43,765 nt of DNA from the sequence record ON286972.1; one strand, written 5' to 3'. The position numbers and the translations under genes are program-made. Of this stretch, positions 20,140 through 26,868 are shown one piece after another (the first letter of the stretch is position 1; each line of letters begins with the position of its first letter). The notes beneath the pieces are model-generated. The model saw only the letters and a program-made list of their open reading frames with translations. It was not told the DNA's origin and did not search any database.

Positions 20140-21678
20140 ATGCCAGGTAAATTCACTGACAAAAACGGCGGCAATATGGCTGGACACTCTGATAAATGGA
20201 GTGATGAGAATCGTCGCAAAAATAGTTTCCAAGCGGGGCAAGGTTCCCGTGGCTCTCGCAACCAAGGAACGGGAGAAGCTGGGAAAGCAAACACAGTTGC
20301 ATCACAGGGTCTTGATACTTCAAACATGTCCCAGCATGAAAAATTGAAGTACTTCAATAGTCTTGGTCTTTTAAATCCGCAGCAGAAGCAACAACTTGCT
20401 GCACTGGATAAAGCACAAGAACAACCTAAAGCAGCACCAGAAGCACCTGCACAGCCTAAAGCGGCTAATCCGGTAAAAGAACTAAGTGATAAACTTGGGA
20501 AGATCTTTGCTAACAAACCACAACTAATTCAAGGTATCGTAAAAGCACTTCAAGCGGTTCCTAAAGAACAACTCAAGGATAAAGCACAAGCTGTTCTTGA
20601 TAGTATGAAAGGGAATACCAGTACTGAACCAACTGAAGTATTCAGTACTATCATGCGTGCACTTGAAGGTAAGCCACAGGCTGATGATGATATTGAGTTT
20701 GATGAACCTGCACAAGAAGTAGCAAATCTTGACTCAATCGTTTCTACATTTGGAAAAATTGGTGCAGAAGATAAGACTAATGCACAACAAGTTAAGAATG
20801 TACAAGCTAAGTTACAAAATCGTCTTGAAGGTAAAGATGAAAAGATTAAACTTGCAGCAGATGCGTTGAAGAAAGCATTAGAATCATATAAACCTGGTGA
20901 GAAATCTCGCTTCATTACTGCAATGAATGCAGTATTCGGTGCAATGAAGAAGTATGAAGCTGAACACGGTGAGAAAGTAACTCCTGATGGATATCTCCTT
21001 CGCAAAGATGAAGAAGGTGCTGTTGACCAGAAGGACGCTGAACCAGACTATGGTAATTTACCAGATACAGTTGATATGGATGGTTACATTCATCGTCCTG
21101 ATATGCAAGAATTTGGTTCAGACAAAGAAGGTTTTGAACATGCTATGGCTGTGTACAAAGCATTAGTCGATAATCCACAATATGCAAATAGTTTTGTAGA
21201 TGAGTTTGATAGTGCATGGAACAACTACCAAGACAAAGGATATGATTTCCCAGCAGAAGCAGCATTCTTTGAACTAGGTAAACTTCTTGCTAAAAATGGT
21301 ATTAATGTTGGTTCTAATGGTGAAGCAAACACTTCAGAAATGGACGCTGAATTGGCTAAAGATCGTGAAATGACTGATAAGTCAATTCATGAACTACAAA
21401 AGCTAATGATGTGGATTGCTGAAATTGGCAAGAAAGCTGGTGCAGATCCTAAGAGCATTAACAGCAATATTAGTTGGATTAAACATAAGGTTGATAACAA
21501 TGCCCGTAAATTACAAAAGGCATGGACCGACCTAGTGAATGGTGCAGACGATGTTGATATCGATTCACCAGAAGCATACGAGTACGCATTGAACACACTT
21601 GATAACTCTTTCAAGGATTACGAAAATGGTAACGTAACTGATTGGGAAAAGGATATCATGCATAAGTACGGTAAATGA
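20140..21678 (+). CDS. 512-aa charged, low-complexity protein; candidate late/virion-internal protein
   Basis: long ORF, GGAG RBS, perfect TATAAATA upstream, high-expression-like codon use. Confidence 0.55.
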   Translation: MPGKFTDKNGGNMAGHSDKWSDENRRKNSFQAGQGSRGSRNQGTGEAGKANTVASQGLDTSNMSQHEKLKYFNSLGLLNPQQKQQLAALDKAQEQPKAAPEAPAQPKAANPVKELSDKLGKIFANKPQLIQGIVKALQAVPKEQLKDKAQAVLDSMKGNTSTEPTEVFSTIMRALEGKPQADDDIEFDEPAQEVANLDSIVSTFGKIGAEDKTNAQQVKNVQAKLQNRLEGKDEKIKLAADALKKALESYKPGEKSRFITAMNAVFGAMKKYEAEHGEKVTPDGYLLRKDEEGAVDQKDAEPDYGNLPDTVDMDGYIHRPDMQEFGSDKEGFEHAMAVYKALVDNPQYANSFVDEFDSAWNNYQDKGYDFPAEAAFFELGKLLAKNGINVGSNGEANTSEMDAELAKDREMTDKSIHELQKLMMWIAEIGKKAGADPKSINSNISWIKHKVDNNARKLQKAWTDLVNGADDVDIDSPEAYEYALNTLDNSFKDYENGNVTDWEKDIMHKYGK

Positions 21679-22037: not shown

Positions 22038-22298
22038 ATGCAAAACCCTGAATTGAAAATGTTTACACAAATCCGTCTTGCTCGTGTTGAACATGACACT
22101 AACTATGTACTGAACGATGGTCCTCCACAACGCGTTGAAGTTGGTTATATTGACGTTGATAATTCACAATCTCTTCTGATTACCATTGGTTCTAACTCTT
22201 ACAGTGTTGCTACACTGGAGAGTGTATTGTCCCTGGCACAATCCGCAAGGATTGCCCGTAACGCTCTTATGAACTGTGATGAACCTGATAATGAATGA
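22038..22298 (+). CDS. hypothetical protein
   Basis: GGAG RBS. Confidence 0.75.
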   Translation: MQNPELKMFTQIRLARVEHDTNYVLNDGPPQRVEVGYIDVDNSQSLLITIGSNSYSVATLESVLSLAQSARIARNALMNCDEPDNE

Positions 22299-22629
22299 TT
22301 ATATGTATGAATTAAACCTGGTATCGTTTATCGTATCAGGACTAGGATGGATGTACTATATGCTTGGGTATATTTTATTATTCTTCCGATACAATACATT
22401 CTACAAACGCTATTGGGATGATGCACCAATTCACTTCTTCGCATTTGTATTCTTAACTATGGCAGTGGGTGAAGTACTGCTAACTGGTATCCAAAGTACT
22501 GGTGGAATGATGTGCACACTAACAACATTCTTTGTTGTTTTTGGGACTGTAGTTTGGTTTTTCGCGTGGGGACTCTTCTCTTTGATTATGAAACTTGAGA
22601 AACTCCGAGACAAATTACCAGAGCGTTGA
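22291..22629 (+). CDS. 3-TM membrane protein, similar to the 27.9-30.4 kb array
   Basis: LLFFRY after TM1, ends KLRDKLPER. Confidence 0.65.
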   Translation: MNDYMYELNLVSFIVSGLGWMYYMLGYILLFFRYNTFYKRYWDDAPIHFFAFVFLTMAVGEVLLTGIQSTGGMMCTLTTFFVVFGTVVWFFAWGLFSLIMKLEKLRDKLPER

Positions 22630-22639
22630 TGAAAAGTAT

Positions 22640-22667
22640 TTGACAAACTCAACTAGTACTGTATAAT
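22640..22667 (+). promoter_or_regulatory. sigma70 promoter
   Basis: TTGACA-16-TATAAT with AGTACT in spacer; short leader hairpin GGGATGA/TCATCCC downstream. Confidence 0.8.
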
Positions 22668-22714: not shown

Positions 22715-23266
22715 ATGATTACTTTTAAGAAAACTGCCAACCACATCCATGAAATTTACATTAACGGTCACAAAGCTGGCCTTCTTCGTTTACTCGCCCA
22801 TCATCCTGATGTTACCGTATCTGATAATGAACCTAAAGATTGGCGTGTATTTTTCTTTGGAAAGTACAGTGATTTTCAAGTATCAAACCTGAAGAACATT
22901 CGTTCAGTATGCACGTTAACTGAAATTAAAGAAAAGTTAACCAAAGCATTGAAAACTAATCCAGATGGTGTTCTTCCACCTGATAACTTTGTAGAGAAAG
23001 GATATGCCTTAGCTCATTTCAAAGATGGTACTATTCAATCTATCAGTACTGAATATGAATACCAATGGACTGAGTACTTCACTTATGGCTCCCGTAATAC
23101 TTTGATGGCTTCACGTAGTAAATTGGAAGAAGTACTGACTCGTATGAATGAACGCGAGCGTCAGTACTATGAACCAGAAATGTGGAGTTCAACTTACATT
23201 GACCGTATTGACTATGTTATGATGACTCCAATCTTTGACACTGCTTACTATGATTCTTTGAAATAA
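22715..23266 (+). CDS. hypothetical protein
   Basis: GAGGA RBS. Confidence 0.8.
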   Translation: MITFKKTANHIHEIYINGHKAGLLRLLAHHPDVTVSDNEPKDWRVFFFGKYSDFQVSNLKNIRSVCTLTEIKEKLTKALKTNPDGVLPPDNFVEKGYALAHFKDGTIQSISTEYEYQWTEYFTYGSRNTLMASRSKLEEVLTRMNERERQYYEPEMWSSTYIDRIDYVMMTPIFDTAYYDSLK

Positions 23267-23277
23267 GGATAACTTAT

Positions 23278-23454
23278 ATGAAACTACGTACTCGCAATCG
23301 ACTGATGGATGCCCTATATCATGAACAGTGTTCATTAAATGAAGTAAAGCGTCAGTTAATGTACACATATCAGTTACCCGCTCGTGTTGCAAAACAACGT
23401 GCTAACGAATTGCTGAAAGAAGCAATCGAGTACTGGGAATCTGATTCGTACTAA
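23278..23454 (+). CDS. hypothetical protein (58 aa, not in ORF track)
   Basis: AAGGA RBS; MKLRTRNRLMDALYHEQ... Confidence 0.7.
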   Translation: MKLRTRNRLMDALYHEQCSLNEVKRQLMYTYQLPARVAKQRANELLKEAIEYWESDSY

Positions 23455-23493
23455 TATTACGTGATATGTCACGTTAATTAAGTGAGGCGATAA

Positions 23494-23745
23494 ATGAAAA
23501 TATTATTAGTTCTAATACTACTAATTGTTTTACCATTTACTTTAGTATCCCCTGAACTTGCATGGAATGTGTTTGTGTACTTAGTATGTACTATTGTAGT
23601 AAATGGTATCTTGTTCTTAGTTCTATTCATAAATGGAATAGGACACGGTGGAGGATGGACCAGTACTGCTGATATTGTACATAAAACCACTATGTCTTTA
23701 TTTGTAGTGTGGAATTTATTCTGGACTTGGTTTGTGTTCTTCTAA
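23494..23745 (+). CDS. membrane protein
   Basis: GAGG RBS; hydrophobic. Confidence 0.7.
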   Translation: MKILLVLILLIVLPFTLVSPELAWNVFVYLVCTIVVNGILFLVLFINGIGHGGGWTSTADIVHKTTMSLFVVWNLFWTWFVFF

Positions 23746-23754
23746 TTAAAAAAT

Positions 23755-24126
23755 ATGAATATAGATTTGAAAGGTGCAACACGAACTGTCATACTCATTG
23801 GGGAATATGCTATCAAGATTCCAACCTTCAAAAGCTGGAAGTTATTCCTAACTGGAATGATAGCTAACCTCAATGAACGCTCATGGATGCAGTACTCCAA
23901 GCGTAGTGACAGTGGGATATGTCCTACTCTGTGGTCATCGCGAACTGGCTTAATAACAGTACAGAAACGTTGTAAGCCAGTACAACATAGGGGTTTGTTT
24001 TGGGTGGAGTTGAGTGCATTAGCATTGAATTCAGAGTTGAGTACTGACTTCTTCTATTCAGATGCGAAGCCAGAAAACTTTGGATATTTGAATGGTAAGT
24101 TAGTTAAGCTTGATTATGGAGATTAA
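23755..24126 (+). CDS. minimal protein-kinase-like protein
   Basis: GATRTV (Gly loop), AIK, NLNE, DAKPEN catalytic loop, DYG. Confidence 0.7.
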   Translation: MNIDLKGATRTVILIGEYAIKIPTFKSWKLFLTGMIANLNERSWMQYSKRSDSGICPTLWSSRTGLITVQKRCKPVQHRGLFWVELSALALNSELSTDFFYSDAKPENFGYLNGKLVKLDYGD

Positions 24127-24147
24127 TATGTACGCATTGTATAATAA

Positions 24148-24186
24148 AGAAAAGGATTGACTTCAGTCAGCCCTTTTTTCTATAAT
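24148..24186 (+). promoter_or_regulatory. fused terminator/promoter element (copy 7)
   Basis: AAAAGGATTGAC-TTCA-GTCAGCCCTTTTTT-C-TATAAT. Confidence 0.85.
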
Positions 24187-24214
24187 CATTTCATCGAAAC
24201 GAGAGGATGAATAC

Positions 24215-24652
24215 ATGACACGCATTAACTTAGTACATGTTAAAGAACTTGCTGACCAACATCTGATGGCTGAATATCGTGAACTTCCACGTGTGTTTGG
24301 TGCTGTACAAAAACATGTTCAAGCACGTAAGCGTGTACGTGATTTCAAAATTAACAGTACTTATCTGTTAGGTTCAGGTCATGTAACATTCTTCTACGAC
24401 AAGTTACTATACTTACAGAAGCGTCATATTGATATTGTTAACGAATGTTTGCGTCGTGGTATGAAGATTCAAAACACTGAAGTAAACGACATTAGCGGCT
24501 TCCCTGCTGAGTTTTGTAATGACTACGTACCATCGGAGTCCGAGATTAAAACATCACGCGAGCGTTTGATTGAGAAGCTTCAGATGAAGCCTAAGTGGTA
24601 TAAGTTTACTGATGTTGAGCTACCTATATATTATGTTGATATGATACAATGA
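24215..24652 (+). CDS. denV: pyrimidine dimer DNA glycosylase / endonuclease V
   Basis: [35 protein letters not shown] closely follows T4 DenV. Confidence 0.97.
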
Positions 24653-24879: not shown

Positions 24880-24915
24880 AAGGGGTTGACTTCGGTCAGC
24901 CCTTTTTGCTATAAT
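24880..24915 (+). promoter_or_regulatory. fused terminator/promoter element (copy 8)
   Basis: GGGGTTGAC-TTCG-GTCAGCCCTTTTT-GC-TATAAT. Confidence 0.9.
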
Positions 24916-24941: not shown

Positions 24942-25181
24942 ATGAAACTATCTTTTATACGTTTAGCAGAATTCTTCGGTACTGATATAATTACTTTACA
25001 ACAAATTGCAGACAATACTTCATTAAGTACACAAGAAGTACTTGACTTAGATGTGATAGAGTGTGATAATACTTCTATCGATTATAAAGAAGGTCTTGTC
25101 GAAAAAGATAAGATTCAGGCTAAGATTAATGGTGCTGGACGGGTTCAGTACTGGAAAGGAGTTTTAAGTCATGCCAGCTAA
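24942..25181 (+). CDS. hypothetical protein
   Basis: GAGG RBS. Confidence 0.7.
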   Translation: MKLSFIRLAEFFGTDIITLQQIADNTSLSTQEVLDLDVIECDNTSIDYKEGLVEKDKIQAKINGAGRVQYWKGVLSHAS

Positions 25182-26868
25182 ATTAACCCCTAAACAAGCA
25201 AAAGAAAAATTCAACAAAAAAGTATTAGAACATAACGTTCCAATTGAAGCTGATTATAGTAAGTATGAAAATGCCAAATTAAAAAACATCCAAGTAGTTT
25301 GCAATGATGTATTAAAACACAAATCAGGCATATCACAAATATATCTTATGGATCACGCAAACCTCACACACCCATCCAAAAAATTTGGTTGTCCTGAATG
25401 TGAAGACTGGTATAATGGTCATGCTAAAAGTTTAGATATTTTAATTGTTAGGGAAAGAATTAATTCTTGGATTAGTACTTATGGCGGGATTATTGATACG
25501 GTTAGTGGTGAAGTTGAAGTTTATAAAAATAATTCATCCAAAATACCATATATTTGTAAAAATGGAACTAAAAAAACGCTTACTATTTCTTCACTTGGCG
25601 ATGAAATCGGTTGTAATTGTTCTAAATGTAAAGCTGAATTAATATCAGAAATCGAAGATAACAATGAATATACATCCATGACTACTGTTGATGATTGTGT
25701 TACAATTTCCCATTTTAAATTTGGGGATGATGTTGCATTCTCGTGGATTTCACCATTGGAAATGAAAAAACATGGTTACTGTCTTGCCGAAAAAATGAAA
25801 GAAAAAGCATTGTCGGTTGGTAAAAATATTATTGGATATGCAATATCATCTCTTAGTGAATGGAAAAATGAAAAAACTCCTGTAATAACCGAACACGAAG
25901 GAGTATTATATCGTATTTCCAAAGCATCATATTTGATCAATAATAATATAGTACATAGACCACATTATACAAAAAATAATTTTTTATATTATTTTTACAA
26001 ATGTTCACCTAACAATCAACTTATTACACCAATCCTAATACCTGATGATATTGGTACAAAAAAGAAAATTAAAGTATGTTATAAATCATGTGGGTGTGAA
26101 TATGATATATCTGTGGACGTTATAATGAACAGAAATTTAAAAACTTGTGGAAACTGTAAAAATATAGATACTAATAAATTTATAGAACAGTGCTTGGAGT
26201 TCACTTCAAGTGGAGATTATATCTATGATAGAGTAAACTATATAAATCAAAGTACACCTGTAACTATAGTTCATAAAATTTACGGCGAATTCAAAAGTAC
26301 ACCACAAAATCACTTAATACATTTAAAAAACGGTTTGAAATATGATACAGCTAACTTTAAAATAAAAAATTTAACTCAATTTAAAATTAAAGCAAATGAA
26401 GTTCATAATAACTTATATAATTATGATAAAGTTGATTATGTAAATTCTTCAACGAAAGTATTAATAACTCATCCAGTATATGGAGACTTTTGGCAAACTC
26501 CAGCAAGTCACCTTGGTGGGTGTGGTCATCCACTTGCGGCTGGTCATTCTCAGCAATATGCATATATTCATAATATTTTGGATGGTGTTTTATCTGTAGC
26601 ATTGAAATATGGGATTGAAAAGCAGAAAGGTAAGAGGGTGATGCAGCAAAATAAAAAATCCATGTTTCAAGTTCAATCTCTGTATACTTATTTTTTTCCA
26701 TCTGTATACGAATGTAAGCAAGCTGAAAAAGAATGTAAGAAACTATTTGGTAAAGGTGTTTTAACTAAACAAGAAATGCCAGACGGGTATACTGAAACAA
26801 CTACACCAAACAACATAGATAAAATTATTGCCATCTATGAAAAATGGGGTGGGGTGAAACAAAACTAA
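25171..26868 (+). CDS. free-standing homing endonuclease-like protein (DUF723-type repeats, Zn knuckles, C-terminal GIY-YIG-like domain)
   Basis: YDKVDYVNSSTKVLITHPVYGDFWQTP repeats; CPEC, CSKC, CGNC; YAYI..LKYGI..R..AE..DGYTET. Confidence 0.7.
   Translation: MPAKLTPKQAKEKFNKKVLEHNVPIEADYSKYENAKLKNIQVVCNDVLKHKSGISQIYLMDHANLTHPSKKFGCPECEDWYNGHAKSLDILIVRERINSWISTYGGIIDTVSGEVEVYKNNSSKIPYICKNGTKKTLTISSLGDEIGCNCSKCKAELISEIEDNNEYTSMTTVDDCVTISHFKFGDDVAFSWISPLEMKKHGYCLAEKMKEKALSVGKNIIGYAISSLSEWKNEKTPVITEHEGVLYRISKASYLINNNIVHRPHYTKNNFLYYFYKCSPNNQLITPILIPDDIGTKKKIKVCYKSCGCEYDISVDVIMNRNLKTCGNCKNIDTNKFIEQCLEFTSSGDYIYDRVNYINQSTPVTIVHKIYGEFKSTPQNHLIHLKNGLKYDTANFKIKNLTQFKIKANEVHNNLYNYDKVDYVNSSTKVLITHPVYGDFWQTPASHLGGCGHPLAAGHSQQYAYIHNILDGVLSVALKYGIEKQKGKRVMQQNKKSMFQVQSLYTYFFPSVYECKQAEKECKKLFGKGVLTKQEMPDGYTETTTPNNIDKIIAIYEKWGGVKQN

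Follow-up and report, generated by a model that had tools for sequence, protein, structure and literature searches.

The gene A4_221 lies in the genome of A4 (ON286972.1), a 355-kb Escherichia jumbo phage of the genus Asteriusvirus. The window analyzed here (43,765 nucleotides) matched the final 43.8 kb of this record at 100% identity, and positions are counted from its first nucleotide unless stated otherwise. A4_221 was found as an intact ORF of 123 amino acids plus a stop codon at positions 23755..24126 of the + strand. It is annotated in ON286972.1 as a hypothetical protein, and no long ORF competing with 23755..24126 was present when both strands were checked. A4_221 is the last gene of a packed four-gene run at positions 22715..24126. 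This run is headed by a promoter-like site at positions 22640..22667 (+), located 5' of the ORF at 22715, which agrees with the sigma-70 consensus at 12 of 12 positions (TTGACA-16-TATAAT) and was identified solely by matching that consensus. Further near-consensus sigma-70 sites were present at positions 24157-24186 and 24886-24915. The first of these, an 11/12 consensus match on the + strand (24157..24186), is located 5' of denV and suggests a separate transcription unit 3' of A4_221. The clustering of near-consensus sites suggests that the region around A4_221 consists of early transcription units read by the host polymerase, and judging from the promoter-like sites A4_221 itself is probably expressed early. 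No Shine-Dalgarno sequence was visible in the 9 nt between the preceding stop codon and the A4_221 ATG, indicating a weak ribosome-binding site.

Two small ORFs located 5' of A4_221, at positions 23494-23745 (+, 83 aa) and 22276-22629 (+, 117 aa), encode strongly hydrophobic products that look like membrane proteins; the 83-aa product had no PHROG match. On the 3' side, the neighbor of A4_221 is denV (24215..24652, +), which encodes endonuclease V, a pyrimidine-dimer glycosylase. In other Asteriusviruses an 89-aa gene (121Q gp216, PHROG 8563) is present between the mini-kinase gene and denV. This gene is missing in A4 due to a deletion of approximately 250 bp that is bounded exactly by two copies of the repeat AATAAAGAAAAG (24127-24214 compared to L002:2228-2497). 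The deletion is marked in A4 by a single copy of this 12-nt repeat at positions 24143..24154 (+); it left a 10-codon stub of gp216, and the promoter-like site of denV is intact. A 565-aa ORF at positions 25171-26868 (+) matched the phage endonuclease and HNH endonuclease PHROGs phrog_681 and phrog_559 and is probably a homing-endonuclease-like gene; other endonuclease genes occupy the same spot in relatives.

The initial annotation of this locus had described a protein carrying the core motifs of a kinase in their usual order, and all of these motifs could be read from the A4_221 translation. Their conservation was determined in an alignment of 146 sequences assembled from homology-search matches. 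Alignment and structural model place G7-A-T-R-T-V12 (23773..23790, +) in the strand 1/2 loop, where it replaces the glycine-rich loop; among 144 sequences G7 and R10 were each found in 142 and V12 in 135, and position 9 was T in 122 and S in 15. The strand 3 lysine, K21, belongs to A19-I-K21 (23809..23817, +) and was invariant in all 146 sequences. In helix C (residues 38-41; 23866..23877, +), E41 was invariant and is the salt-bridge partner of K21. The "NE" noted there in the initial annotation is N40-E41, yet the conserved asparagine is N38, present in 142 of 144 sequences. The catalytic loop D103-A-K-P-E-N108 (24061..24078, +) was assigned by HMM alignment to D-L-K-P-A-N of TTK/Mps1. The metal-binding motif D120-Y-G122 (24112..24120, +), equivalent to DFG, contains the invariant D120 and is followed only by D123 and the stop codon. 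The protein had previously been said to end two residues after DYG; it does stop right after this motif, with one residue rather than two.

K21, E41 and D120 were the sole invariant columns among these divergent members and correspond, by alignment, to the classical ATP/Mg triad. Positions conserved in at least 90% of the 146 sequences were G7, R10, V12, P23, F31, G34, N38, G65, G110 and Y121. Two coupled versions of the catalytic loop were seen: 74 sequences carry D-K-N and 41 carry E-K-S, and only 5 of 144 have a mixed D/E-N/S form. In one third of the family the catalytic aspartate is replaced by glutamate. Since the D-K-N and E-K-S variants are coupled and mixed forms are rare, these positions appear to cooperate. 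A4_221 has the strand 3 Lys, the helix C Glu, the D-x-x-x-x-N loop and the DFG Asp expected of a protein-kinase-like enzyme; none of the canonical elements K, E, D-x-K-x-x-N and D-x-G is missing.

A4_221 matched PHROG 4301, a family of unknown function, with an E value of 3.4e-43 over profile positions 40-167 of 225, and this was the sole PHROG returned. No Pfam, NCBIfam or PADLOC model matched A4_221, kinase models included. When the 146 members were scanned against Pfam, weak PIP49_C matches were obtained in 4 members only (best E 1e-3). The family has no Pfam model, and its members are mostly labelled hypothetical; no experimental study of it was found in the literature searched. When 1.84 billion cluster representatives were searched with the family profile, 1217 proteins were retrieved at E<=1e-3, 641 of them at E<=1e-10. 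Among the best 150 of the 1217 representatives, nearly all were 110-135 aa in length, matched to their last residue and ended in D-Y-G. Among 160 retrieved proteins, 105 stopped 0-1 residue past D-x-G, and the median length was 123 aa. The same short form ending at D-x-G was found at 34 IMG/VR loci, and the orthologue in Asteriusvirus relatives (121Q, SHEFM2K and others) is 123 aa in length with 92-97% identity. It had been proposed that a longer gene in relatives would reveal the A4 ORF as a truncation; when this check was run, the relatives were not longer as a rule. These findings show that the short form is the family norm in close and distant relatives alike.

The family is scattered across jumbo, T4-like, N4-like, Felix-O1-like, Vequintavirinae and YuA-like phages. 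A genome-contig scan with one exact peptide pattern returned no relatives in cellular genomes, and the family appears to be largely phage-restricted. A protein of 1073 aa with 16 matched stretches (P0037) was rejected as a member because it is a tandem-repeat translation artefact. Longer relatives were found in Kc263 (267 aa), OBP_197 (273 aa), RP12 (209 aa), AH04 (163 aa) and YuA-like phages (142 aa). A further PHROG 4301 protein, 194 aa long, is encoded by A4 itself outside the window, at positions 20552-21136 of the record (L014:1501-2085). This paralog has the loop G-A-G-S-S-R-I-V, the catalytic loop D-I-R-K-Q-N and a 22-residue tail past DYG, and gave a weak match (E 2e-4) to the PD-T4-6 defence kinase model; a protein of equal length is present in RaK2 and CBB. 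The tails of the long forms past DYG were mostly unrelated to one another, with only those of Kc263 and OBP_197 matching each other, and kinase C-lobe models did not match any of the long-form tails. Such tails, mostly unrelated and without a C-lobe match, appear to have been added in individual lineages to a core that lacked a C-lobe, and do not resemble an ancestral C-lobe. A 257-aa long form (P0124) modelled without an alignment gave a pLDDT of 44.

The AlphaFold2 model of A4_221 built from the 146-sequence alignment was compact, with a mean pLDDT of 95.2 and a pTM of 0.86. It contains strands at residues 2-4, 10-15, 18-23 (with K21), 58-61, 68-71, 109-112 and 115-118, a long helix at residues 28-43 (with E41), a helix at residues 79-92 and a short one at residues 97-101. 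The loop at residues 103-108 precedes the last two strands, and DYG follows strand 115-118. In the model these elements are ordered as in a protein-kinase-like fold: the N-lobe comes first, with its five-stranded sheet and helix C, and then helix E, the catalytic loop and finally the DFG strand. The helical C-lobe, comprising the activation segment and helices F to I, is absent, as strand 115-118 is the last element of the model.

When the model was compared to the PDB with Foldseek, the best 50 matches were all kinase-like, among them TTK/Mps1, Legionella Lpg2603, WbdD, PRPK and CK2, with a probability of 1.0 and TMq values of 0.55-0.65. In a VIA-align comparison to 48,161 chains, kinase-like folds accounted for 49 of the best 50 matches (Z 8.3-6.3); the sole non-kinase row was SAICAR synthetase. 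These matches span model residues 1-123 and include ULK4, BRAF, Rio1, Rio2, APH(2''), Bud32, the RNA kinase Ark1 (173 aa) and OspG (169 aa), and their Z-scores did not separate protein from non-protein kinases. The match to human Mps1 (6gvj) stops at Mps1 residue 667, which we take to be one residue beyond the Mps1 DFG motif. Searches of the PDB by sequence gave no match with either the single sequence or a 14-sequence profile. The 146-sequence profile returned only TTK, at sub-threshold E values (best 0.064), with the catalytic loop and DYG aligned in the correct register to D-L-K-P-A-N and D-F-G. Alignment, AlphaFold2 model, Foldseek and VIA-align thus all bear out the earlier description of a stripped-down kinase domain without an activation segment or C-lobe helices, and the resemblance goes far beyond what chance would give.

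Within the genus A4_221 is under strong purifying selection, as dN/dS was 0.085 compared to 121Q and 0.046 compared to SHEFM2K. The orthologue looks split in CMSTMSU (MH494197.1) and is partial in TH47 (MT446416.1) and SD-1_S14 (OR699183.1). These broken copies consist of two pieces or of the C-terminal half only, and may reflect either real disruption or sequencing error. Because the gene is split or partial in a few Asteriusvirus records, it is apparently dispensable, at least in the laboratory. In Tequatrovirus G4507 (L049:2501-2881) a member has inserted by the tRNA cluster, with homologues of trna.3 and trna.2 on either side, and T4 has no family member at the same position (L053, 72628-73328). 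The broken copies and the absence from T4 indicate that A4_221 is an accessory gene with a sporadic distribution.

The genomic surroundings of other family members were also compared. In three YuA-like siphovirus contigs (L036:2888-3436, L038:3264-3830 and L040:3500-3994) a DenV homologue is encoded directly 3' of the family member; these homologues are 37% identical to 121Q DenV (E about 1e-28). The recurrence of mini-kinase and denV could mean that the two genes move together as a module or that they are functionally linked. In the T4-like phage JS10 the family member is located directly 5' of the RNA ligase 2 gene rnlB, in a Felixounavirus it lies between the DNA ligase and DNA polymerase genes, and in a Vequintavirinae phage it occurs in a DNA polymerase gene context. 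No neighbor gene conserved across lineages was found, downstream genes included, which leaves no gene that could be proposed as a separate source of the C-lobe. The possibility that gp216 encodes such a C-lobe was considered and rejected, as it belongs to PHROG 8563 like gp210 and is cleanly deleted in A4.

A4_221 would be a stand-alone protein-kinase-like enzyme that comprises Hanks subdomains I-VII only. We infer that it binds Mg-ATP through the K21-E41-D120 triad and that D103, K105 and N108 would carry out the transfer of the gamma-phosphate. Lacking an activation segment, A4_221 would not be subject to control through activation-loop phosphorylation and probably remains permanently in an active-like state. 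Since the P+1 loop and helices F to I are also absent, substrate choice must come from elsewhere; intrinsic specificity may be low, or a substrate or partner may dock on the face that normally lies under helix F. D-x-K-P-E-N is the signature of Ser/Thr-specific protein kinases under the Hanks subdomain VIb rule, and because A4_221 has this catalytic loop, protein serine or threonine is the most likely acceptor. As the product of an accessory gene that is probably transcribed early from a host-type promoter, the enzyme most likely has a host protein as its target, and its role may be in host take-over or counter-defence. We give about an even chance to the reading that A4_221 is an active, constitutively "on" minimal kinase of the Ser/Thr type, of low specificity or with a docking partner, and probably early. 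Several features count against it, namely the replacement of the glycine-rich loop by G-x-T-R-x-V, the lack of a library kinase match, the weak ribosome-binding site and the broken copies. Moreover, helix F anchors both hydrophobic spines in canonical kinases, and since A4_221 has no helix F, it may need a partner in order to be stable and to catalyze phosphotransfer.

The same motifs and surroundings can be read differently. The acceptor might be something other than protein, such as nucleic-acid ends, tRNA, a nucleotide or a small molecule, with A4_221 working together with the neighboring repair enzymes. The gene lies directly 5' of denV in Asteriusviruses (apart from the 89-aa gene where this is retained) and in the YuA-like contigs L036, L038 and L040. 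It is adjacent to rnlB in JS10, is found by a tRNA cluster in G4507 and lies at DNA ligase and polymerase genes in a Felixounavirus. In addition, the archaeal RNA kinases Ark1/ArkI and aminoglycoside phosphotransferases match the model at similar Z, and a substrate rich in phosphate might be bound by the arginine of the strand 1/2 loop. However, no neighbor is conserved across lineages overall, and the nucleic-acid-enzyme contexts are ordinary early or middle phage regions, where such genes are common, although these contexts do keep a nucleic-acid role alive as a rival explanation. The fold Z-scores do not discriminate protein from non-protein kinases, and a D-x-K-P-E-N loop characterizes Ser/Thr protein kinases and not APH, choline-kinase or RIO-type enzymes. 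A non-protein acceptor is considered unlikely on this balance. It is similarly improbable that A4_221 binds ATP without being a phosphotransferase, acting as a pseudokinase-like switch, a Bud32-type ATPase or a decoy, or binding a protein of the host or of a defence system as a scaffold and thereby inhibiting it. Such a role would suit a protein that is missing the substrate-binding half of the kinase fold, belongs to a family with Glu for the catalytic Asp in one third of its members and has Bud32/PRPK, which are chiefly regulatory ATPases, among its structural matches. Against this, A4_221 itself retains the full K, E, D-x-K-x-x-N and D-x-G set, and the coupled change from D/N to E/S suggests that catalytic geometry has been maintained and has not decayed. 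The strong purifying selection fits both the catalytic and the switch or decoy readings.

The abrupt stop after DYG, the longer relatives (Kc263, OBP_197, RP12 and the 194-aa A4 paralog) and the broken copy in a few Asteriusvirus records would also be expected if A4_221 were a functionless, decaying remnant of a full-length kinase gene. Nevertheless, the end point is identical in hundreds of divergent clusters, dN/dS is 0.05-0.09, the fold is compact and confidently predicted, and the long forms have tails that are for the most part unrelated and match no kinase C-lobe model. The length distribution and the selection analysis speak against a remnant, which is thereby effectively refuted and can be given only a very slight probability.

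If A4_221 is active, it would be the smallest kinase of this type known. In kinase structural biology, helix F and the C-lobe are regarded as the scaffold that organizes the catalytic and regulatory spines, and a conserved, selected family of approximately 120 aa that retains all catalytic residues but ends at DFG would test how much of the fold phosphotransfer needs. We propose only tentatively, as a possibility that we hold to be somewhat doubtful, that the members of approximately 120 aa are self-sufficient, constitutively active protein kinases, that subdomains I-VII suffice for phosphotransfer without helix F or an activation segment, and that many unrelated lytic phages use such proteins as motif-independent host-modifying or counter-defence enzymes, in parallel to but independently of the T7 kinase (T7K, gp0.7). 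The family would also offer a very small, crystallizable model kinase. Its spread among phages suggests that small kinases may be a far commoner phage tool than annotation shows.

The family was compared with several known kinase systems. The RIO kinases, Bud32/PRPK and ArkI/Ark1 are likewise small and have no activation loop, and they matched the model at Z 7.8-6.5, with PRPK also found by Foldseek. They differ from A4_221 in that they keep C-terminal helices past the DFG equivalent, reach 170-270 aa and showed no sequence match; their catalytic-loop motifs are D-L-S-E-Y-N in RIO and D-L-T-T-S-N in Bud32. OspG matched the model at Z 6.7 with 14% identity, model residues 1-123 aligning to chain residues 30-160. 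In contrast to A4_221, which ends one residue after DYG, the solved OspG chain of 169 residues continues past the end of the model, and its additional C-terminal helices make the partner site. No sequence homology to OspG/NleH was detected in the PDB sequence searches, and the Z-score was no better than for many other kinases. OspG requires a bound partner (E2~Ub) for full activity (PMC11078946).

The closest parallel in concept is provided by Kinase-PolyVal (PF18762), a phage and mobile-element domain that belongs to the Ser/Thr/Tyr kinase superfamily. According to the prediction made for it, this domain retains the residues for ATP binding and phosphotransfer although its C-terminal subdomain has been lost completely, and it also occurs in stand-alone versions (Iyer et al. 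2017, PMC5512222). For the most part it is embedded in giant polyvalent proteins encoded by (pro)phages of Bacteroidetes and Verrucomicrobia, whereas the hosts of the A4_221 family are mainly Proteobacteria. In Kinase-PolyVal the catalytic His and Asp are separated by an insert, while A4_221 is contiguous at Y101-S-D103 and has no His. The conserved Gln in the last N-lobe strand of Kinase-PolyVal corresponds to Met in 118 of 144 family sequences and to Gln in 16, including Q70 of A4_221. The PF18762 HMM matched nothing in the A4 record at E<=10 and none of the 146 members at E<=1. Because PF18762 was not matched and the His-Asp insert is absent, the A4_221 family is treated as different, being either parallel or very distant.

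The initial annotation had pointed to T7 gp0.7, and this comparison stands as an analogy though not as a relationship, because no sequence link was detected. The PHROG scan returned phrog_4301 only, the hhalign probability to T7K (PHROG 2828 / PF27024) was 0.2%, and no phrog_2828 member was present in the A4 genome. T7K is an early phage kinase whose construct 1-242 is active in vitro without motif preference and ends 27 residues past the DFG-equivalent at residues 213-215 (PMC13645617). The enzyme phosphorylates hyper-promiscuously and in this indiscriminate way disarms many defence systems, and a protein of G17 or Munch has been called its homologue (PMC13645617). T7K differs from A4_221 in having approximately 213 residues up to the DFG-equivalent compared to 120, in carrying DPV instead of DYG and in possessing a DNA-binding shut-off domain. 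T7K 1-242 thus demonstrates that high activity is possible in a phage kinase that has hardly any sequence beyond DFG. The missing C-lobe may itself be linked to promiscuity, a suggestion of ours that goes beyond the T7K study. In language-model features the nearest named clusters were T7-kinase (0.92) and Kinase-PolyVal (0.91), values that serve as leads only, and about 150 features were shared with them, below the 170 typical of one family. Precedents for A4_221 are found in OspG/NleH, in the T7 kinase domain and in the Kinase-PolyVal domains without a C-lobe that were predicted in 2017.
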